A stretch of DNA of 63,108 bases, the filler included, from Pelomyxa schiedti (Eukaryota > Protista > Evosea): NCBI GenBank assembly GCA_020536535.1. It is 7 parts of 7 records of this genome, joined end to end, with 100 filler letters (N's around TTAATTAATTAA, not from the genome) between each part and the next. Parts side by side here need not be neighbours in the genome. Positions count along the whole stretch, not along the records: positions 34,690 to 50,265 come from JAHLWZ010001157.1; 6 more parts are not named here. One strand, given 5' to 3'. The notes below the pieces were generated by a model that had not been told where the DNA came from, made no database searches, and saw nothing but the letters and a program-made list of their open reading frames with translations. Position 1 is the stretch's first letter. Each line of letters begins with the position of its first letter. The position numbers and the translations under genes are program-made. Positions 35,225 to 48,960 of this stretch are shown piece after piece.

Positions 35225-37411
35225 ATGGCGTCGTGTGCGGTAGTGGAGCCACAAATAGCAGTTACAGTAGTTGTGGGAGCTGTGGTCCTGCCGCCTAACC
35301 GTCCGTTTCTTTTTTTTTTCTCCCCTGCGCCCTTGCCGACAGGCAACACACCAATTTTTTGACGTTCCAGTTTAGGCATAATTCTTACCGGAACTCTGCC
35401 GATGATGGGGGCATGGCACGTGGAACAGGGCGTTGTGCTCGGAACGCATCACGGCGGCAATATGTGGTCCTGCAGGGTGATGCTGTCAAAGTCAGACTTG
35501 GGGAGGGCTTTGGTCTTCAAGTTTGTGATGGAGGGCGGCCCGTGTCTTGTGTGGGAGACGTGTGAGAATAGGTGCACGGTCCTGGGCTCGTTGTTTGCTA
35601 CCCTCAGGCCTGCTGAGGTCAGGAAGATTTCGCTTGTGTGCCAGTGGAATAACCCCCACGTCTCCATTGTTGGATTTGACGTGGCAGACGTTGCCGAAAT
35701 TGTGGGAGGAGGAAATTTTGCAACTGTTGCTTCTGCGATGTGTGAGATGATTGAAGTTTTGAACAATGGCAGATCGGTTATTGACTCGACTTTCGGGCAA
35801 ATTTCGAATGCTTTTGTGCAACTTGTATGGAGCCGGATACCCAATTTGCTTTCTTAATTGTTCTTTGAACTTTGCCATTTTCTTTTCTGATATGTTGAAG
35901 ATTGCCAGTGAACCAAATGCTGAAAAGCTGACTCTTGGGCAGTGTACCATTCTTGTGCAGTACTGCAATAAAGAATGGGAAAAGCATAGACCACTCCTCC
36001 CTGACGGAGATTTCGATAAGGCATGCTAGAAAGACCAAATTATGTTATTTTTACTCTTGTAGATAGTCAACAGAATGAACTCTCTTTCATCAATCCACAT
36101 TCCAGCCTTGTCAAATGCGTTTTTAAACGAGGTTCTTACTCTTGATCCTGATTCTATTGTTGCTTTGTGGAGGCAAGCGCAAATTTTGTACTCACAATCC
36201 CGCTTCTCTATTGACAATGGTGATTGGAATGTTTTTGATGAAATGGCGAAGTTATATGTATGTAAATAAGCTCTTCTACAATTTTACAAAAAAAAAAAAA
36301 AAGGAGTCAAAATTCCAAGGAGAGTGGTACCTGTTAAGAACAAATCCTTTGGAAACCATATTATCCCTTTCCGATTTCGGTCTGAAAGAGCTATATGATC
36401 ACCTCTCTCAGCTTTGGAAAGCACATACCCCTGCTGTTCCTGATTTGGTATTGTTCAAGACCTACTATTTCAGATAACTAACTTTGTTGAAAATTTATCA
36501 TGAAGATTTTTGATTTATTCGAAAAGGAGATAGCAGACCGAAACGAACCTATCCAAGTGTACAAACTGTACCATTTTTGAATTTATTTCACATTTGCCAG
36601 CTATCCCTTCCCCACTTACTGGAGTGCTCGCCATGAGAGACTAAGTAATGGGTCCTTGAGCCCCATTGACTTTGTTCCAGTAACTGATGATGCGGAGCGA
36701 GCTTCGATATTAGGAAAGTTCACCTCAACCCTCGGGACAACTGCAATAATTATATCTGTACGTGACCTACAACGAGTTATAACTCATAGTAGCAGGTGCA
36801 TAGGATTCAAAATTATGGTTACTGGCAAGAATATTACAGGCGAGTTCAACGACTTTCCGCGAGATGGGGCTCTTCCAATGAGTTGATACTTTTCCATGGC
36901 TCATTTGCTAGAGTAAGGAATGTGTTGATTTGTACTATGGTTAATTTTACGCAGGAGATGCAAGTTGTAGCTGCTCGTTATGGACACAGTAAAAGGTAGA
37001 ATTCGATACACCCATGGGCACTAATCTGACAGAGGTGTTCAGCATTTGTCCTTGTGGGTCAATAGGGGATGGCATTTACTTTGCGATAAACTCGAACTAC
37101 TCACACAATGGGTATGTGACAAAGAACAGTGATGGATCCAAAGAAATGTTTGTCTGCCGCGTGTCTGTTGGCCATACAACGAAAGGTTTGTCGACTCTTC
37201 CGAGCTGTTTTTCTCCATTCCTCACCGAAGCACAGGTCGGCTTGGACTGAAGTCCCCACCACCCACATGTAACGATTCCCCATCCCCATTCCCTTTTTCC
37301 CACTAATGAAACAAACCATAATTAGTCGATTCTGTTACCAACTACCCCGTCATGTACTGCATATTTGACCAGTTCCAGGCCTACGCCGAGTACGTAATAA
37401 GATACCGATAA
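35225..37411 (+). CDS. CBM20 starch/glycogen-binding domain fused to a C-terminal PARP-type (mono-)ADP-ribosyltransferase domain, multi-exon
   Basis: CBM20 signature ILTGTLPMMGAWHVEQG...WSCRV...FKFVM...VWETCENR. ART signature RIQNYGYWQEY, ELILFHGS, GDGIYFAINSNYSHNGY, MFVCRVSVG and VDSVTNYPVMYCIFDQFQAYAEYVIRY*. Confidence 0.75.
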
Positions 37412-38802: not shown

Positions 38803-41800
38803 ATGAACACGGGACAACGAAAAACACCCTCAAACGGCGAAGATGAAGCACCCGTAGATACACCCGCGCCATTAGTCTCTACTTCAAACACGACAACACC
38901 CACAGTCGCCACTTCAACTTCGAACACCGGGATCAGCAGGGGCATGACTACGAGTCACAGCGTAAACAGCAGAGACAAGCGCAAAGCGTGCTGCTGGCCC
39001 GCTCTCAGGCCCCCCGGCGTCCCCACCCCTCCTGCTTTCTCGTCCTCTTCGTCGTCATTTTCATCGTCATTGTCTTCGTCCTCGTCGTTCTTGAACACGG
39101 CGCCGTTGGACTTGGGCAGTGGTGGCATTGTGGGACCCAATGGAGGCGGGGGCGGAGCGGGGAATGGGGTGCGTGACGACCGGCGGAGGTCCAATTCTAT
39201 GCCGCTGGTTGTGAAATTTCCTCCAAACGACGTGGGGGTGGGAAACCAGGGGGCGGTGTGTGAGCTATCGTGCTCTCCGCCGATTCGCGGTGGCCTTGCG
39301 GCTGCTCCTTCGGCGCCCTCTTCGTGCGGCTCTGCCTTGGCCACAGTGCCCCTATGCACACCGAAGCAGGAGGTGGTGCAGACTGGTGGGGGACATTCCA
39401 TCGAGGGGATCAAAACTCCTAGAGCCCACCTCACCTTGGAACAGCTGTTGGGCATGTACTTTGCGCCACTTGTTACTTACAGAGAGCAGCAGTGCGGTAT
39501 TACTCATCAACCGCTATGGTGGTACCGCAGGAAAGCAATGGAAGCAGCACAATTCGAGAAAAACCTGACTTCAACACTAAACTCTGGTTTGTACGTTGCT
39601 GTTGACGAATCTTATATATTTTTGGCAACGTTGATTTCTGCAATTCTACAATCACCCCGAAGTGTAAATCTGGCTTCATTCTCAACTTTACCACTGGCGG
39701 AGCAGAAGAAGCTGGTAAACATGTCCACTTCCAGCCAAGAAGCACTCAGTGTATTGTTTACACTAATTTTACGTGACAACTCAGAATTTCTCCTCCATGT
39801 GGGTCATCAATTAGTGAAAACAGGCAGGTACACTGGGCCCCTATGTGGAGAAAGCCTGGTTACTCTGCAATTAAATGGCTTCCCTGCATTTCGCGAGACA
39901 ATTTTCGTTGAATTTTCCTATACAAACTTTTCTGGGGTGGAATTACGAGGCTTGAACTTCACGTCACTTTCTCTGTGCTGGTGTGATTTTACCAATTCTA
40001 AACTGGATGGCTGCCAATTTCAATGTTCGTGCTTAGATGGCGCATGTCTATCTCAATCGGTCGTGCATTTGGCAGACTTCACAGGAGCATCTCTTATTAG
40101 AACAAACTTCACTCGTTCACAGGCGGACAGTGCCATTTTTGACTGGACAAATATGTTTGAAGCGGATTTATCCCAGATGTGCAGTGAGAGGGCCCAATTC
40201 AAATGCTCGTATTTAGGGGGTGCTTTACTTCATCATGCGATCCTTAAAAGGGCGAATTTCAGTGAAGCCTCGATGGGGACTGCTAGTCTTCTGCACTGCA
40301 ACCTGAAGAATGCAATTTTAACGGGCACACAGGGTTTAACTGTCTCCCAACTCCGGGAGGCGGCAACTGTTTTTCAAGCCCACATCCCTGCTGGTGGAAT
40401 TTCAGTCGTGCCCCCTGAAACACTGGAGCACCTAAAACAAGAATTGAAGTTCGACATTGATCCAGCTGTACCTCTATCTGAAGAGCAACAATACAGCTGG
40501 ATTTCTGACTTCCTGAGTTCTGAGTCCCAAGCAAGTAATGATGGACAACCTCCAAGTTGGGTTGGATTAAAGAAAAAACCATGGAACCATGAACCCCAAT
40601 GGAATGGCACTCCAACAGATACAATTTACAATATGGAACCAGACGAAGAATTGTGGCGTGTTGTGGAGACTCTGGTACACTGTACGAGCGATACTTTGAG
40701 TTATAGATCCAAGCCCTTTGAATTTGCCAGAATGAAAAAAGCAGCCGATACGGGAAGATTGCTTGCGTTCTTGCAGCAGGAGGCAAAGCACCCTCCAATT
40801 CACACGGGAGAAGTGGAGAGTATCAGTATTAAAGAAATAAAGGTGGTCAAAAATTTACAGCTATGGAAGCAGTATCAAGGGGCAAAGAAAGCTATCGCAG
40901 AAGATTTAACTTCACGTGGAATTCAAGTTCCATTGAACGGTGTTGGCTGGCATTCTTCACTCTGTGGTTTGCCTGTTCTGAATTCCCATGTTGGTGAATG
41001 CTGGCTCTTTCATGGTGCAAGCCAATATATAGTTCAGTTGATCACAAAGGGTGGCTTCAGCACCAAATTTTCAACACGAAAAATGTTCACTGGCTATGGT
41101 GCCCTTGGCAAAGGTATATACCTCTCGGACTCCTTTGGGAAGGTCTCCACATATGTCACCTGTCCCAAATGTGGAAATAACTGCTGTTTGTGCACTGACA
41201 AAACCCAGAGTTTAAAAGTAATGTTACTCTGCAGAGTTTTACTGGGCCATGTATTTGTAGATAAGCACAAAGAACATAAATTTGAAGAACTTGTTCCAGA
41301 GGGCTATCATTCCTCATGGGGGCCGTATGCACAGCTTATGCCGGACAGCGCCTTCCAATCTAATGAATTTAGGCTGGATTCTTCCCAGGTTTACCCGGAG
41401 ATGTGCATATTCTATCAAGACAATTCACCTGTGTTTAGATTTGATGTACAAATTCCTGAGACCAAAATCCCCGCTCCAGATTTATGGGCAGCATCACTTG
41501 GCCCCATTGTAGTTCCAGTTACTGATGCACTGAAAGATTTTTATCGCTTAATGCTCCGATCCAAAGATATTGTTCGACGAGAAGCACTTTTAACCTCGAT
41601 TGAGCAAGCATGTTCAAAAGTGCTTCTCAACGCCGATCAAAGAGTCCAACTTGCAATCAGTGAGTTACAACAGAGAGTGATGGCTGAGCGCAATGAATGT
41701 AGAACAAGCCTATTAGGACCAAGTATTCCTGAGAGTGAAAGAATATTTTGTTATGTTACTCAACGTGGGGCCAGTTTTTCTGCCCTTCAACAATGGGGAA

Positions 41801-44800
41801 AAGCAATTGAGCAATACAAAACGGCTTTACAAATACACAGTCACGATGCGAACTTATGCCTCAGCTACGCTGTTGCTAGTTACAAGTTTCAGGAAGACAA
41901 AAAAGAAACTATTACATACCTCAACAGGGCATTTCACATAGAACCGAAGCTCGCTCTTCACATATATGAGAATGAACACTTTTGTTCTCAACTAGCTGTC
42001 ACAAACTGGAGCTTGGATTTAATATCACAAGGCCACACAGACCCGTTGTACCATGAGGAGTGGCTAAGACGAACCTTCTGCGATATGCACCATTACTGTC
42101 TCACAGGAGAGATTTCTTTGATTCAATGTGAGGACTTTTACTGGCAATTTGACTGGGATACACGGCAGAAAATGCTTTCCACATTTTCTTTGCTGACATT
42201 TGGTCAAGACAATTCAGCCACACATCAATCATTGTCTGCTTGGATTTTGGATATCCTTGAAGACCGTTCTGGAAATCACATGCGCGTGAATCATTTATGC
42301 TCATCATGGTCTCTTCAATTTAGTGAACTTTTTTCTCCACCTCCAATTAGCAATGAGAAGGTAGTTGTTTCTTGGGTTGATCGCTTAACTGGACAGACAC
42401 TTACTAGGAATCTTAAACCTAACTTCGTGTCTTCACTTTTCAATAACCAGGGCTACCCAAACTGTTGTGAAAACAACATATCTACTGATCAATGCTTGGT
42501 TGTGTCATTAGAAGAAGAAAATCGATTGATTGCACAGTGTAAATTCTACCCAAGATACCCCTTTAGGCAATACGCTGCTGACGAACTAACATATTCACTC
42601 AGCGGCTATGGCCCAATAACCACTTTGGCAAAAATTATTCATCCAATGAGAAGCGGGCAACCTTATCCAGTTTTATTCTACATGCCATTAGGTGAAGCTT
42701 TACATCAAAAGCACACGAACATGACCAAAACTCCGGTTCTGCACAAAAAGGCTTTCTCCTGGAAATTGTTTGAGACTCTTCTTCTGCAGCCGGAAGGAGA
42801 TCGAGTTGAGAACCTCTCCCTCTATGATGGCTGGATTCTGGGGCTAAACAACGAATCTATTTTACCAAAAGTCTCTGTCCAAGACAACGTCACAAAAGTG
42901 TCCAGCATTATATTCTTTTTCCCTGAAATGAGCATGCCCATCAATCAACATGTGTCTCGTGCCTTTGAGCAGCTAGACCCATGTGCCCTTCTTACAGAGT
43001 GGGGGATGAAACTCGAGAGGTACAACACAAACCTCAACAAGCTCTTCTCTGAAAATCAGATTTCTCTCTACCGAGGTACTCAACAAGGCAGTGCGGATCG
43101 AAATTATAACTGCTATTGCAATTTATCTGCTCTTTTTCGATCGCAGGATATCACCAAGTTGGCTTGCCGGATGGTACACATGCAAGAATTATTAAAGTCG
43201 CCTGCCTCTACAAGCTGGACTCACCAACAGTTCCTTTCCTTTGTGGAACCCCAACTCGCTGCATGCTTTGAGGCAATAAGGACAGACCTTCTTTGTCCCT
43301 CTCCAAAGGTTTCTGTTTTGGTCAGTTGCCTATGGTTCATGCGCTTCGATAAATGTGAGGATGAATACCTTCCAGTTGTGGAGTTGAAGGATACAAACAT
43401 AGCAAAAACTGTGGACACATACCGGCAAATCTTTTGCGTGTACCATTTGGTGCAGGAGAATCAAGATATAACCCCTTTCAAGACAACAAGTGATGATGTG
43501 AGAGAAGCTGTGTTCAACAGTCTAGACTGGATTGCATTAGGTCCCAAATATAGCCAAGTAGTACTGCAGACCTGCGCCGACCTGAGAATTCCTTTTACCA
43601 AGCTTTCGATTTCCTTTAACCAGCAGCTTTCTGCGCCCTCTCTATGTAGTTTACTCTCTGCCTCAATCCAAGTGATCAAGTTGACATCCTGCCCTTTTGA
43701 ATCCTCCCTGCTGGGGAGAATATGTGAATTGTGCTCTAGTTTAACCACGCTCCAGCTGGAAGAACTGGATCAGCTTTCGCAAATATGCGAGTCAACGGCA
43801 TGTACAACATTTTCTCCTACCACCCAGTGGCAAACTCTACAAACCCTTGTCGTCCTGAACTGTAAGAATCTTGTACAAGTGACTCTCACTCAGATCCCTA
43901 AACTGAGCTCCTTTGAAGTCCGAAACTGCTTTAAGTTACAAAATATTAATTTGGTAATTAGCAGTGGTTCACTAGAGTTCGTTCACCTGGAGAATTGCCA
44001 TGCACTCCAGAATGTTTCTATTACCTCTCCAGAGGCCTTCGTCAACATGAAATCTCTTCAAGTTCTCTCTTGCCCACAATTGGAGGTTGATGGGTTTACT
44101 CTCCCTGTTCCGGTTCTACAGCTTCGAACATACAACTTCAAGGATCAATCTTATTATGTCAACCGGTATAAAGTAATGATATCAACGCTCTTTTCTGACT
44201 TCAGATGTCCATTGTATTGCCAAGACCTTATTGCGACCTTGTTCAGCTATCTGCGGGGCTATAAGATATGCCTTCATCATGAATCAAGGAAAGTTGTTGA
44301 TACAGCAATACAAAACCTTCTGCTACTTCGTAAAAATCTTGTATCTGCAACGATTCCAACTCTGTTTAAGGGACTCAATGACAAAGACAACTCTGTGCAG
44401 TCAAAGGTGATGACAGTGTGGCACAGTGCTCTCAAATCCAGTGCCCATCTGATTTCACCCCAAATTATTTCGTTCTTCTTTAAGGGTTCTAGAGTACAAC
44501 AACTCCACAACGACCTTTTGGTAGAGGCTCTGGGGTCAGCTCTCGCTTATAACGTATACCTCAATGTGGATATCTGCACTGCATTGCTGCAATTACTAGG
44601 TGATAGTAACTCCGGCATAAGATGCAGATCTATAAAAGTTATCGCCAAAGCAAATATATCCCTGGATGCCGAGTGGGCCCAGCGTCTGCAACTGGCAATT
44701 TTGAATGCTTTAGAAGATGAATCAAGTGACGTTAGAGGCGAATCTATCCATGCGTGGGCATGCCTTATCACCTCTTTCAAAGAGCCATCCGACTTCAAGA

Positions 44801-46464
44801 GGGTGAACAACTTCTCCCATTTCTTCAGGGCCCTGTCAGACAGTAACAAGCGGGTCTGTTCCAGGGCTATTAGAGCTTTTACCAAAGTTATGAAGTACCA
44901 TCCATCGAGGATGAGCGAGACACTCCTTTTTAGGTTTTCTCAGTTGCTTATAGCAGAAATTACAAATGAGTCATGGGAAGACAGTGCTATACGAGTCAGT
45001 CCAGGTCGCCGTGCCCTTGCAGTTCTTTCCAGGTTATGCTCTGAGCAATTATTTCAGTCTATGAGAACAGTATTGACAGAACTACTGAATAGTGAAAACC
45101 TTACTATTAAGAGAAGAGCTGCTTTGGGGATAACGGATATCCTCAAGGAACGAGCAGCGCTATTTTCTCCCGATAGTGTTTCTGTCCTCGCCCCTCTGTT
45201 ACTCAAAAGCTTCGATTCCACTGAACCCGTGAAAGCCCTAGGAGAGTTGGTTCGTTCTTGTTCTCAGTCGTTTTCTGTGGAACTGCTCCGGGATATTCTT
45301 GTCACTCTCCTAAAGTTGGTAGCCAATCCAAAAGCTACAATATTCGATGACTGGAGAAAATCTCATGTCTTGGGGGTTCTTCTCTCTTTGTTTCCACTTT
45401 TGGACAGAAATGGCATTGACTGGTACACTCCTGACCTGCAAACTAATATATGTTCTCTGTGTTTTGAAGGCGGAATTTTCACTAAAGCAAAGGCAGCGGA
45501 AGTCATGGAGTATATTCTAAGCACAGATGATAGATTATCACAGATCATGCCCCCTTTACTGAATGCTCTTGGAGGCAATATCAGCTCGTCACGCTGTGGT
45601 GCCGCCTTATTACTGGAAAAAGTTACTCAGCAATTTCCAAAAATTGTGAATTCGGTCATTCTTGCAAAGATGTCATCTGCACTCCAGACTGCACTTCAGG
45701 AGCGAGACGAGAACCTTGGACAGCTTGTCAAATCCATTGGAGAAGTTTTGCGACTAGCCTCCAATTTCATCACAACTGAAACGCTTCTGCAAATGTCTCT
45801 AATGTTATTTCAAGCAACATTTCACACCAAGCTAGCCAAGCCAATTCCAGTGGCTTCCTGGGGTGAACTGGTGAAATCTCTCAGTGAAGACAACTCTTCC
45901 TTTGCATCTCAGATATGTAGAGTACTCTGTGATTCCCTTCGGGAGAGAAATCAACCACTAGTCTACGCTGCAGCCGGGGCCCTCAAGCACATAGTCACCC
46001 TAAGCAACATTTCACCAACCATCGCCACTCAAATTCTGCAATCCCTTATTGCTTCCCTATTGGCTTTCTCCAACCCAACCTTTCAAGAAGAAGCCGCTGC
46101 CGCACTTGTAATGCTGGTCAGCACCAGAATGGAATTAGTCACACCGGAAATACTCACACAGGTTTTCCGGGTGGTGCCCTCGTTCAAAGCGAACCACAAA
46201 TCCAACCTCCACCTGTGTTCACTCTCCTGCCTAAGCTTTCCCAGTCTTCTTGCGCCCTCTCTTGTCCTCCTGCTCCCCCCGCAGCAGCAAACAATGAAAT
46301 TGCTTGGCCCGCAGTCCCCCGCTCTTCCCAGAATTGTAGTTGAGAGGGTTGTGTACTTCGTAGCAACTAGTCCCTCTGCCTCCCTCAATGCCGCCAGAGT
46401 TTGTAAGGCTTGGAAGAGGCTTTTTCTTCGTTACTGCATAAAACCCACTAAAACACATCCCTAA
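38803..46464 (+). CDS. 2553-aa intronless multidomain protein: pentapeptide repeats, PARP/tankyrase-like ART, TPR, atypical kinase-like, LRR, HEAT repeats, C-terminal F-box-like
   Basis: One uninterrupted 7.66-kb ORF. Domains read from the sequence lie at about 39910-40340 (pentapeptide), 40620-41420 (ART), 41760-41950 (TPR), 42500-43050 (kinase-like), 43560-44130 (LRR), 44280-46150 (HEAT) and 46310-46430 (F-box-like). Confidence 0.9.
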   Translation: MNTGQRKTPSNGEDEAPVDTPAPLVSTSNTTTPTVATSTSNTGISRGMTTSHSVNSRDKRKACCWPALRPPGVPTPPAFSSSSSSFSSSLSSSSSFLNTAPLDLGSGGIVGPNGGGGGAGNGVRDDRRRSNSMPLVVKFPPNDVGVGNQGAVCELSCSPPIRGGLAAAPSAPSSCGSALATVPLCTPKQEVVQTGGGHSIEGIKTPRAHLTLEQLLGMYFAPLVTYREQQCGITHQPLWWYRRKAMEAAQFEKNLTSTLNSGLYVAVDESYIFLATLISAILQSPRSVNLASFSTLPLAEQKKLVNMSTSSQEALSVLFTLILRDNSEFLLHVGHQLVKTGRYTGPLCGESLVTLQLNGFPAFRETIFVEFSYTNFSGVELRGLNFTSLSLCWCDFTNSKLDGCQFQCSCLDGACLSQSVVHLADFTGASLIRTNFTRSQADSAIFDWTNMFEADLSQMCSERAQFKCSYLGGALLHHAILKRANFSEASMGTASLLHCNLKNAILTGTQGLTVSQLREAATVFQAHIPAGGISVVPPETLEHLKQELKFDIDPAVPLSEEQQYSWISDFLSSESQASNDGQPPSWVGLKKKPWNHEPQWNGTPTDTIYNMEPDEELWRVVETLVHCTSDTLSYRSKPFEFARMKKAADTGRLLAFLQQEAKHPPIHTGEVESISIKEIKVVKNLQLWKQYQGAKKAIAEDLTSRGIQVPLNGVGWHSSLCGLPVLNSHVGECWLFHGASQYIVQLITKGGFSTKFSTRKMFTGYGALGKGIYLSDSFGKVSTYVTCPKCGNNCCLCTDKTQSLKVMLLCRVLLGHVFVDKHKEHKFEELVPEGYHSSWGPYAQLMPDSAFQSNEFRLDSSQVYPEMCIFYQDNSPVFRFDVQIPETKIPAPDLWAASLGPIVVPVTDALKDFYRLMLRSKDIVRREALLTSIEQACSKVLLNADQRVQLAISELQQRVMAERNECRTSLLGPSIPESERIFCYVTQRGASFSALQQWGKAIEQYKTALQIHSHDANLCLSYAVASYKFQEDKKETITYLNRAFHIEPKLALHIYENEHFCSQLAVTNWSLDLISQGHTDPLYHEEWLRRTFCDMHHYCLTGEISLIQCEDFYWQFDWDTRQKMLSTFSLLTFGQDNSATHQSLSAWILDILEDRSGNHMRVNHLCSSWSLQFSELFSPPPISNEKVVVSWVDRLTGQTLTRNLKPNFVSSLFNNQGYPNCCENNISTDQCLVVSLEEENRLIAQCKFYPRYPFRQYAADELTYSLSGYGPITTLAKIIHPMRSGQPYPVLFYMPLGEALHQKHTNMTKTPVLHKKAFSWKLFETLLLQPEGDRVENLSLYDGWILGLNNESILPKVSVQDNVTKVSSIIFFFPEMSMPINQHVSRAFEQLDPCALLTEWGMKLERYNTNLNKLFSENQISLYRGTQQGSADRNYNCYCNLSALFRSQDITKLACRMVHMQELLKSPASTSWTHQQFLSFVEPQLAACFEAIRTDLLCPSPKVSVLVSCLWFMRFDKCEDEYLPVVELKDTNIAKTVDTYRQIFCVYHLVQENQDITPFKTTSDDVREAVFNSLDWIALGPKYSQVVLQTCADLRIPFTKLSISFNQQLSAPSLCSLLSASIQVIKLTSCPFESSLLGRICELCSSLTTLQLEELDQLSQICESTACTTFSPTTQWQTLQTLVVLNCKNLVQVTLTQIPKLSSFEVRNCFKLQNINLVISSGSLEFVHLENCHALQNVSITSPEAFVNMKSLQVLSCPQLEVDGFTLPVPVLQLRTYNFKDQSYYVNRYKVMISTLFSDFRCPLYCQDLIATLFSYLRGYKICLHHESRKVVDTAIQNLLLLRKNLVSATIPTLFKGLNDKDNSVQSKVMTVWHSALKSSAHLISPQIISFFFKGSRVQQLHNDLLVEALGSALAYNVYLNVDICTALLQLLGDSNSGIRCRSIKVIAKANISLDAEWAQRLQLAILNALEDESSDVRGESIHAWACLITSFKEPSDFKRVNNFSHFFRALSDSNKRVCSRAIRAFTKVMKYHPSRMSETLLFRFSQLLIAEITNESWEDSAIRVSPGRRALAVLSRLCSEQLFQSMRTVLTELLNSENLTIKRRAALGITDILKERAALFSPDSVSVLAPLLLKSFDSTEPVKALGELVRSCSQSFSVELLRDILVTLLKLVANPKATIFDDWRKSHVLGVLLSLFPLLDRNGIDWYTPDLQTNICSLCFEGGIFTKAKAAEVMEYILSTDDRLSQIMPPLLNALGGNISSSRCGAALLLEKVTQQFPKIVNSVILAKMSSALQTALQERDENLGQLVKSIGEVLRLASNFITTETLLQMSLMLFQATFHTKLAKPIPVASWGELVKSLSEDNSSFASQICRVLCDSLRERNQPLVYAAAGALKHIVTLSNISPTIATQILQSLIASLLAFSNPTFQEEAAAALVMLVSTRMELVTPEILTQVFRVVPSFKANHKSNLHLCSLSCLSFPSLLAPSLVLLLPPQQQTMKLLGPQSPALPRIVVERVVYFVATSPSASLNAARVCKAWKRLFLRYCIKPTKTHP

Positions 46465-47799: not shown

Positions 47800-48960
47800 G
47801 TTGCCATCACCACTTTTCTTTATGCTCTTGTATGGCAACTCTTCTTTTCTTTGGATACCAGTCACAGCTGGAATCGCTGGTTCAAGTGGTGTGCTCCTCT
47901 GGTTTTTTACCAATACAAAGCCATTAAAAGGAAACCATATAATTGTTTTTGTTGGACTGGTGCGATGACCCAAATATTCTTCTTCACTTGACAGCCAATA
48001 CAGATCACAAGTTTACTTTGCCTGACGTTAATGTATCGTCTTCTTGCTTGATCTTCAAACGACTCAAGGCATCATTTACAGGATTCAACTTTCGCTGATC
48101 CATGCACCACCCTGCAGGCACATTCCCGCAATGCTAATAATGGCCAACTCAATTTTCCTTGAACTTCTCTCAATTGCAGTTGCATCGGCAATCAGAGTAA
48201 AGTGCCTGCCCAAAAGCCTCAAAATGACATGCCGGGTAGTGGAGCGTGTTTCTGCACCTTTATCATTGCGTCTCCTGCTTATTAAAGCTCAGTTGCAAAC
48301 ACCTTGTTCCAGTCTGGATGATTCGTAACAGGCGAATTCATCTGTTCTGCAAATGCGTGCTCTTGTGCAAGCCCCCTTATCCAAGGTTGATGTTTGGAGC
48401 CCATATCAAATACTCAAGCACAATCTCAGCAAATCCTGTGGCATGAAGCGCCCCTGATAAGCCACCAGTAAAAGCTTAGAACACCTCACTTCTGTTACAG
48501 TTAATGCTTTCAACTTTCACGTTATCTGGCTGAATGCCTAGGTACTTCCATTTGGTTGTTGCCATCTGACGTTCCATAAGGTTCACTTGGCTGCCCAGCT
48601 TTGTGCAAGTATGTCCCATCAAGCACTTTCTTGGTGAAAAATGATAACAACACGGCTTGGCTCAAGTTGAATTCCTTGCAACACACCATCGATCAGACTT
48701 GAAAATGTGGCTGGCGAATTTACAAGCCCAACAGGCATCATGCACCTTGAACTGATGGATCCCCTTGTTGTACGAAATGCCCGTTTTGACTTGGAATCTT
48801 TCTTACCAAAACAACAGGGGCATCCGGCTCCGGGATATTCCACGGTTCAATGATGATGTATTTTTCAAGCATGTTCAGAACCTCCTTGTCAGTTATCTCA
48901 TATTCCGATGTGCGCGGCATTTGCGCCCTTAACGAACCGAACTGCACACTGCCTGCCACA
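47800..48960 (-). mobile_element. Second decayed Ty3/Gypsy pol remnant
   Basis: PRTSEYEITDKEVLNMLEKYIIIEP...APVVLVRK and MMPVGLVNSPATFSSLIDGVLQG match Gypsy RT motifs. Many stops and frameshifts are present. Confidence 0.8.

Follow-up and report, generated by a model that had tools for sequence, protein, structure and literature searches.

How did the archamoeba Pelomyxa schiedti, whose genes are on average cut by several introns, come to carry an uninterrupted reading frame for a giant protein in which a tankyrase-like PARP domain is combined with pentapeptide repeats, a kinase fold and long repeat solenoids? The gene in question, Pelo_16630, occupies positions 38803..46464 (+) of a stretch of 63,108 nucleotides (nt; hereafter the window) composed of parts of seven records of P. 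schiedti assembly GCA_020536535.1; its own contig, JAHLWZ010001157.1, measures 15.6 kb. A first-pass annotation, made from the sequence alone, had offered two readings of this locus: an effector-derived gene acquired from an intracellular bacterium, or a host sensor resembling nucleotide-binding leucine-rich-repeat receptors (NLRs) with ADP-ribosylation as its output. Our analysis of Pelo_16630, its two paralogs in the same genome (Pelo_4303 and Pelo_10683) and their bacterial relatives indicates that Pelo_16630 is probably a domesticated giant effector-type gene from uncultured low-GC (guanine-cytosine) Gammaproteobacteria, in which the PARP domain was kept and the kinase fold decayed.

Gene model of Pelo_16630

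The open reading frame (ORF) at 38803..46464 (+) encodes 2553 amino acids (aa) and is the sole long ORF of the 15.6-kb piece. Since the runner-up there reaches only 179 aa, its length is far beyond chance, and Tandem Repeats Finder detected no tandem repeat inflating it. The product is 100% identical to the NCBI entry "hypothetical protein Pelo_16630" (P0001) of P. schiedti, which bears out the ORF as first reported. The public model is 2492 aa long: it starts at M48 (38944) and removes, in frame, a 42-nt GT..AG stretch at 39208..39249 (+). This stretch, a putative intron, contains no stop codon, and the reading frame stays open through it. The initial description of the gene as free of introns thus holds for the uninterrupted ORF but not for the public model. 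Against a genome mean of 7.43 introns per gene (PMC8887013), Pelo_16630 is a clear outlier in intron content. The domain list of the first-pass annotation also proved essentially correct, the terminal F-box alone being sub-threshold.

A retained PARP domain and a decayed kinase fold

An ADP-ribosyltransferase (ART) domain had been placed at ~40620-41420, in agreement with a tankyrase-like, PARP-type ADP-ribosyltransferase that we delimited at 40615..41424 (+; aa ~605-874). Pfam model PF00644 matched aa 661-844 with 41.2 bits against a cutoff of 26.7, and the top matches of a PDB sequence search with the region were all tankyrase-1/2. The AlphaFold2 (AF2) model of the domain (predicted local distance difference test score, pLDDT, 83.9) superposed on tankyrase-2 with Z 21.6 and a root-mean-square deviation (rmsd) of 2.1 Å over 199 residues at 27% identity. 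Z values against ten human PARP structures were 17-21.6, with PARPs other than tankyrase at 17-19, while diphtheria-toxin-type ARTs gave only 5-6. The H-Y-E triad (H737, Y773 and E855) is invariant in our six-protein family alignment and kept in all three Pelomyxa copies; in the HMMER alignment to tankyrase, E855 falls one column off the tankyrase catalytic Glu, and the H or E of the triad is lost in two more distant non-Pelomyxa family members. Four cysteines, C787, C790, C795 and C797 (41161..41193, +), are likewise invariant in the family alignment, and most of the Cys loop is conserved across the three Pelomyxa paralogs. The cluster occupies the same loop position as the zinc site of tankyrase and is therefore a putative zinc site. 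Pelo_16630 belongs to the PARP family but is no tankyrase: its likeness to tankyrase is confined to the catalytic domain, and ankyrin and SAM domains are absent. A WWE domain ahead of the PARP domain, suspected from W-rich motifs, was rejected: Pfam gave no match, and AF2 modelled aa 520-605 as a low-confidence helix only.

The second enzymatic fold lies at 42289..43251 (+; aa ~1163-1483). It has no sequence relative in Pfam or the PDB and was identified by fold comparison alone. Its AF2 model (pLDDT 86.8) is closest to PI4KII-alpha (Z 14.2, 248 residues, rmsd 3.9), followed by actin-fragmin kinase (Z 10.9), CotH (10.6), Fam20, PI4KIII-beta, MavQ (8.7), HipA and CtkA, and a Foldseek search with the model returned kinases only among the top matches, which substantiates the kinase-like fold suspected earlier. 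Family motifs, namely the Lys in 'AYxK', 'DDKxDN' and 'SxDxDHAF', sit at the positions expected for kinase catalytic motifs. The conserved Lys, the 'DDKxDN' loop and 'SxDxD' are kept in most bacterial members of the family, including P0003, P0158 and P0004-6. Pelo_16630 keeps K1247 and N1337 but has the family's conserved Asp residues replaced by G1332, N1349 and E1351; in Pelo_4303 and Pelo_10683 the 'AYxK' Lys is lost too. Given this replacement of the conserved catalytic Asp positions, the kinase fold of Pelo_16630 is probably a pseudokinase.

The loss of kinase catalytic residues in three of three Pelomyxa copies, together with the disappearance of an F-box-like tail from two of them, would also be expected if the gene were a decaying, functionless relic of a transfer. 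The frame is nevertheless open over 7.6 kb, and the three diverged paralogs, at about 33-50% identity to one another, still have the H-Y-E triad and most of the Cys loop in common, which argues for long purifying selection on the PARP part. We thus allow the relic only a slim chance. Since H-Y-E is kept and the kinase residues are lost in all Pelomyxa copies, the pattern suggests that ADP-ribosyltransferase function was retained and that the kinase turned into a scaffold.

Relatives and their bacterial context

A word-based protein search returned five proteins with the same domain order (P0002-P0006), and an exhaustive profile search over 1.84 billion representatives raised to eleven the count of those that combine the PARP domain with the kinase fold. 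These comprise the three Pelomyxa proteins (Pelo_16630, Pelo_4303 = P0002 and Pelo_10683 = P0011) and eight others. The architecture is shared end to end by P0002-P0006, P0011, P0012, P0014, P0158 and P0043, and runs from a pentapeptide beta-helix through a tankyrase-like PARP domain, tetratricopeptide repeats (TPR), a PI4KII-like kinase fold, FBXL-type leucine-rich repeats (LRR) and a HEAT solenoid to a C-terminal F-box-like motif that is present in some members. The first-pass annotation knew of no described protein with such an architecture. This is true of the literature, in which we found no published description of pentapeptide+PARP effectors, of tankyrase-like bacterial PARPs or of the full architecture, but not of the databases, where Pelo_16630 itself is deposited and at least 10 further proteins share its layout.

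For two of the eight non-Pelomyxa members, P0003 and P0158, the contig is clearly gammaproteobacterial. P0003, a protein of 3420 aa that additionally has an OTU domain, is encoded on a 21.9-kb metagenome contig next to MlaA, a pseudouridine synthase, BamD, CsrA, HemW and SurE; this HemW is ~54% identical to HemW of Gammaproteobacteria metagenome-assembled genomes (MAGs), including 'Coxiella sp. DG_40'. The 166-kb contig that encodes P0158 (2526 aa) belongs to the MAG 'uncultured Gammaproteobacteria MFD02248.bin.1.53' and also holds CydAB, a polyprenyl synthase, transposases and ankyrin, WD40 and FG-GAP proteins. A second family copy on the P0158 contig (L008 1814-8920) is split into four consecutive ORFs of 995, 292, 417 and 453 aa; either a pseudogene or sequencing frameshifts may account for the breaks. 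The family-bearing bacterial contigs have a GC content of 37-39% and densely packed genes.

For effector context, we looked at 16-23 kb around each bacterial gene, and U-box, Ank, WD40 and OTU genes were found around family members. A U-box gene lies directly downstream of both P0003 (L001 14131-15237) and P0014 (L011 6694-9234), and an ankyrin/LRR protein gene follows P0004. Such surroundings are no more than suggestive of donor proteins working as translocated effectors. The E3-ligase genes beside PARP family members may reflect a conserved PARP-E3 link. In the amoeba, an F-box protein gene follows Pelo_4303 (L003 16556-17752).

The kinase-LRR module is not confined to this family. It also occurs in more than 100 large PARP-less proteins (P0017-P0154, 1.5-4.2 thousand aa), whose heads include SidM_N/DUF294 nucleotidyltransferase, Ras/Roc, ankyrin and OTU domains; one of these proteins is annotated from a Gammaproteobacteria MAG. 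Contig 46 of Azospirillum oleiclasticum (L009 6546-7478) encodes a protein whose similarity is restricted to the PARP region (28% identity, query residues 51-311). A giant virus was considered as the vector of the gene and rejected, as a PARP-region profile found no relative in the viral contig collection.

Residence in the amoeba genome

The assembly was obtained from seven micromanipulated, symbiont-laden cells (PMC8887013) and the Pelo_16630 contig is only 15.6 kb long, circumstances under which a bacterial gene could have been wrongly joined to amoeba DNA. The composition of the gene speaks against this: Pelo_16630 has a GC content of 45.3% and a third-codon-position GC (GC3) of 44.9%, equal to its flanks (45.7%) and different from its bacterial relatives (GC 37-40%, GC3 28-36%), and spliced genes stand on both sides of it. 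The two diverged paralogs, at 33-40% identity, are situated within contigs of 81.9 kb and 144.7 kb, between spliced eukaryotic genes (BRCT, FBPase_2, F-box, peptidase M3 and TruD). Pelo_4303 has a 45-nt GT..AG intron containing an in-frame stop, and Pelo_10683 a 52-nt intron after codon 10. Between Pelo_16630 and its nearest bacterial counterpart, identity is only ~34-38%, and the symbionts known from P. schiedti, namely Syntrophus, a clostridial bacterium and a methanogen, include no gammaproteobacterium (PMC10579272). The host-like GC, the spliced flanks, the paralogs on long contigs, the stop-bearing intron and the symbiont list together make contamination or chimerism very unlikely. Pelo_16630 is a genuine nuclear gene of Pelomyxa schiedti.

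Phylogeny and direction of transfer

Two trees were reconstructed with IQ-TREE under LG+C20, one from the kinase fold and LRR (45 rows) and one from the PARP-to-LRR region (23 rows, 1069 columns), and both were rooted on kinase-LRR proteins without the PARP part. The PARP family formed one clade (100/100). Within it, the three Pelomyxa proteins formed one clade (100/98), whose sister was the bacterial P0003 (100/98-99) and which was nested among the remaining non-Pelomyxa proteins. Forced monophyly of the non-Pelomyxa members cost ~18-19 log-likelihood units, with p = 0.017 in the approximately unbiased (AU) test on the PARP-to-LRR alignment. The rooted trees, combined with intron poverty and with the lack of other named eukaryotic members, point to one bacterium-to-Pelomyxa transfer followed by two duplications. 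The bacterial origin proposed in the first-pass annotation is thereby supported, both by full-length relatives on gammaproteobacterial contigs and by the nested position of the Pelomyxa clade; that the donors would live inside cells is suggested by their eukaryote-like gene content.

Several points weigh against a bacterial donor. With the shorter kinase+LRR alignment, the AU test did not reach significance (p = 0.10), the tested group was defined only after the first tree had been seen, some branches are long, and the base of the PARP family is unresolved in both trees. Six of the eight non-Pelomyxa members (P0004-6, P0012, P0014 and P0043) come from metagenome or Logan contigs, and their bacterial origin is read not from housekeeping genes but from tightly spaced genes, low GC and neighbours of effector type. 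As noted above, the known symbionts of P. schiedti include no gammaproteobacterium, and the F-box is sub-threshold. Finally, every domain type in Pelo_16630 is typical of eukaryotes, and the deep origin of its parts is probably eukaryotic; for the same reason, the bacterial family itself was probably assembled from eukaryote-derived parts.

The opposite direction, in which the gene would be native to the Pelomyxa or amoebozoan lineage and was acquired by host-associated Gammaproteobacteria, draws on some of the same observations: the tankyrase-like PARP, FBXL LRR, F-box, HEAT and PI4KII-like fold are all eukaryote-typical, one of the two AU tests and the base of the family are indecisive, and host-associated Gammaproteobacteria have acquired many eukaryote-like effector genes. 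It accords poorly with a single Pelomyxa clade nested beside P0003 and with the AU result on the longer alignment, and the kinase-LRR outgroup includes Gammaproteobacteria MAG proteins and SidM_N-type heads. It also accords poorly with the presence of 0-1 introns against the genome-wide 7.43 per gene, and with the Pelomyxa trio being, in the 1.84 billion representatives, the only named eukaryotic members among those whose source was checked. That most bacterial copies still have the kinase catalytic residues, which have decayed in the amoeba's, fits a derived state on the amoeba side. Taken together, we regard reverse transfer as unlikely. A round trip, which we likewise consider improbable, would extend transfer from bacteria: these would have joined eukaryote-derived modules into a giant effector for manipulating the host, and Pelomyxa would have recaptured it, silenced the kinase and kept the PARP domain, the three copies now serving as SCF-linked (Skp1-cullin-F-box) ADP-ribosylating regulators or decoys that control or police its obligate consortium of prokaryotes.

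Remaining parts of the protein and neighbouring genes

Pelo_16630 begins with a Ser/Thr/Pro/Gly-rich low-complexity extension (aa 1-~200; 38803..39402, +). It is absent from the bacterial relatives, and the relatives in the family alignment have only 33-149 residues ahead of the pentapeptide region. The extension is followed by a family-conserved N-terminal region (aa ~205-365; 39415..39897, +), in which S316, L321, L323, R324 and D325 are invariant; a PDB sequence search with aa ~200-366 found no relative. The pentapeptide-repeat beta-helix comes next (aa ~366-520; 39898..40362, +). The repeats, noticed already in the first reading of the sequence, matched PF00805 above threshold (E 2.3e-16, 59.4 bits against a cutoff of 20.2) in four stretches between aa ~370 and 510, and the HetL, PipB2 and Qnr models also matched the region, all below their own cutoffs.

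Downstream of the PARP domain lie TPR-like helical repeats (aa ~975-1045; 41725..41937, +), which are weak in Pelo_16630 alone (E 0.002-0.02) and strong when the family profile is compared with designed TPRs (E 3e-33). The kinase fold is followed by Cys-containing LRRs (aa ~1531-1800; 43393..44202, +), supported by Pfam, family profile and fold and belonging to the FBXL/SKP2/TIR1 type: the best matches of the family profile were FBXL2 (E 2.6e-36) and FBXL17 (E 6e-23), then TIR1 and SKP2, with structural Z values of 6.5-7.6. A long HEAT/ARM solenoid (aa ~1900-2460; 44500..46182, +) was recognized in Pfam by Adaptin_N (E 1e-11) along with HEAT, Cnd1 and HEAT_2. All three repeat types had been named by the first-pass annotation, as had a terminal F-box-like helix. 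The C-terminal F-box-like motif (aa ~2508-2544; 46324..46434, +) aligns with the tail of the bacterial P0003, and among the Pelomyxa paralogs it is found in Pelo_16630 only. All of its scores are sub-threshold: Pfam F-box-like gave E 0.028 for Pelo_16630 and E 0.0045 for P0003, and the best PDB match of a three-sequence tail profile was the F-box of FBXO42 (E 0.017).

LRR and solenoid repeats joined to an enzymatic head are what one would look for in a host NLR-like immune sensor, in which the LRR/HEAT part senses a ligand and ADP-ribosylation is the output, and an immune role adopted later would be compatible with a bacterial origin of the family. Pfam, however, detected no NACHT, NB-ARC or other STAND (signal transduction ATPase with numerous domains) NTPase, even at E<=1. 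The central domain is a kinase fold, the LRRs are of the FBXL substrate-receptor type and not of the NLR type, and the whole architecture was inherited from bacterial relatives. Lacking an NTPase domain, Pelo_16630 is not an NLR, and we give this second proposal of the first-pass annotation hardly any credence.

Two unrelated PARP-type genes stand side by side at this locus. The upstream neighbour of Pelo_16630 (35225..37411, +) is a spliced gene of 537 aa with a different PARP catalytic domain that has no Cys loop, and with a faint CBM20 match. We considered it as a tandem duplicate and rejected this, since tblastn gave E 0.06 over the GxGxY region and the Cys loop is absent, indicating a different PARP type. 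On the other side, short ORFs at 48619..48959 (-) resemble a reverse-transcriptase fragment (RVT_1, E 4e-4) and overlap a region annotated as downstream genes; they are probably a decayed retroelement.

Proposed working and significance

We propose that a single transfer from the gammaproteobacterial giant-protein family brought the gene into the Pelomyxa lineage. There it would have ameliorated to host GC, added its low-complexity N-terminus, gained a few tiny introns and been duplicated into the three paralogs Pelo_16630, Pelo_4303 and Pelo_10683. The PARP domain would be the active part, modifying either its own protein or bound proteins with ADP-ribose from NAD+; an intact H-Y-E triad would allow for either poly- or mono-ADP-ribosylation. 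The surfaces of the pentapeptide helix, TPR, LRR and HEAT parts would choose targets or partners, and the kinase fold, devoid of its conserved catalytic residues, would have a scaffolding role alone. Through its F-box-like tail the protein may dock to Skp1/SCF, which would then couple ADP-ribosylation to ubiquitination. The FBXL-type LRR and the possible F-box point to the ubiquitin system, as do the OTU domain carried by P0003 and the U-box genes adjoining two of the bacterial proteins. The ORF, its domains and folds, the relatives, the tree and the residue states were observed; enzymatic activity, partners, the SCF link and the lifestyle of the donor are inferred.

Gene transfer from bacteria to amoebae is already well known; what is new here is the family, its chassis and the selective decay after capture. 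On the reading preferred here, a whole giant effector-type gene moved from a bacterium to an amoeba, where it was kept, triplicated and remodelled, with one enzymatic head retained and the other decayed. The family constitutes a previously undescribed group of PARPs, found in Gammaproteobacteria and one archamoeba, that combines a tankyrase-like catalytic domain with a non-tankyrase architecture. Beyond the family itself, more than 100 large proteins emerge as a wider set built on a chassis of PI4KII-like kinase fold and FBXL-type LRR with interchangeable heads (PARP, SidM-like nucleotidyltransferase, Ras/Roc and OTU), the kinase-like domain of which is covered by no Pfam model. With U-box genes next to two of the bacterial proteins, and with F-box and OTU parts besides, a connection of ADP-ribosylation to ubiquitin signalling is suggested that can be put to the test.

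Comparison with known systems

Tankyrase-1/2 (PARP5a/b) resemble Pelo_16630 in being its best sequence and structure match, in the H-Y-E triad and in a Cys-rich insertion at the zinc loop. The cysteine pattern differs, being CxxC..CxC in Pelo_16630 and Cys/His in tankyrase. Tankyrase has ankyrin clusters and a SAM domain, neither of which Pfam finds in Pelo_16630, where the PARP domain instead shares a chain of 2553 aa with pentapeptide repeats, a kinase fold, LRRs and a HEAT solenoid. A PARP1-type helical regulatory domain was not detected in Pelo_16630. Strict tankyrases are metazoan, and the bacterial PARPs surveyed so far are short WGR-PARP, PARP1-like and Clade-1-like proteins thought to have been gained horizontally (PMC4245714). 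The bacterial relatives of Pelo_16630 share with these the presence of an H-Y-E PARP domain in bacteria, and are unlike the WGR-PARPs in their length of 1.7-3.4 thousand residues, their tankyrase-like catalytic domain and their fusion to effector-style modules. An atlas of L. pneumophila effectors does not mention PARP, and the ART catalytic residues of its effectors are of the Arg-Ser-Glu type (PMC11696984).

The kinase region is similar in fold to PI4KII-alpha (Z 14.2) and, at Z 8.6-10.9, to MavQ, CtkA, CotH and actin-fragmin kinase. It differs from these kinases in having no sequence match in Pfam or the PDB and in the replacement of conserved Asp residues by G, N and E. The likeness of the LRR to FBXL2, FBXL17, SKP2 and TIR1 is strong, whereas the F-box-like motif is sub-threshold; moreover, it stands at the extreme C-terminus of Pelo_16630, ~700 residues after the LRRs, whereas in FBXL proteins the F-box precedes the LRRs. 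In the tankyrase-RNF146 pair, ADP-ribosylation marks proteins for ubiquitination, which would make it the closest functional analogy to the working proposed for Pelo_16630.

As an evolutionary parallel, the Dae amidases of ticks are domesticated bacterial effectors derived from type VI Tae effectors. In both cases, a bacterial gene for an inter-organism weapon would have been captured and kept under selection in a eukaryote. Pelo_16630 differs from Dae in being giant and multi-domain, in consisting of eukaryote-like modules and in the decay of one of its two enzymatic folds.

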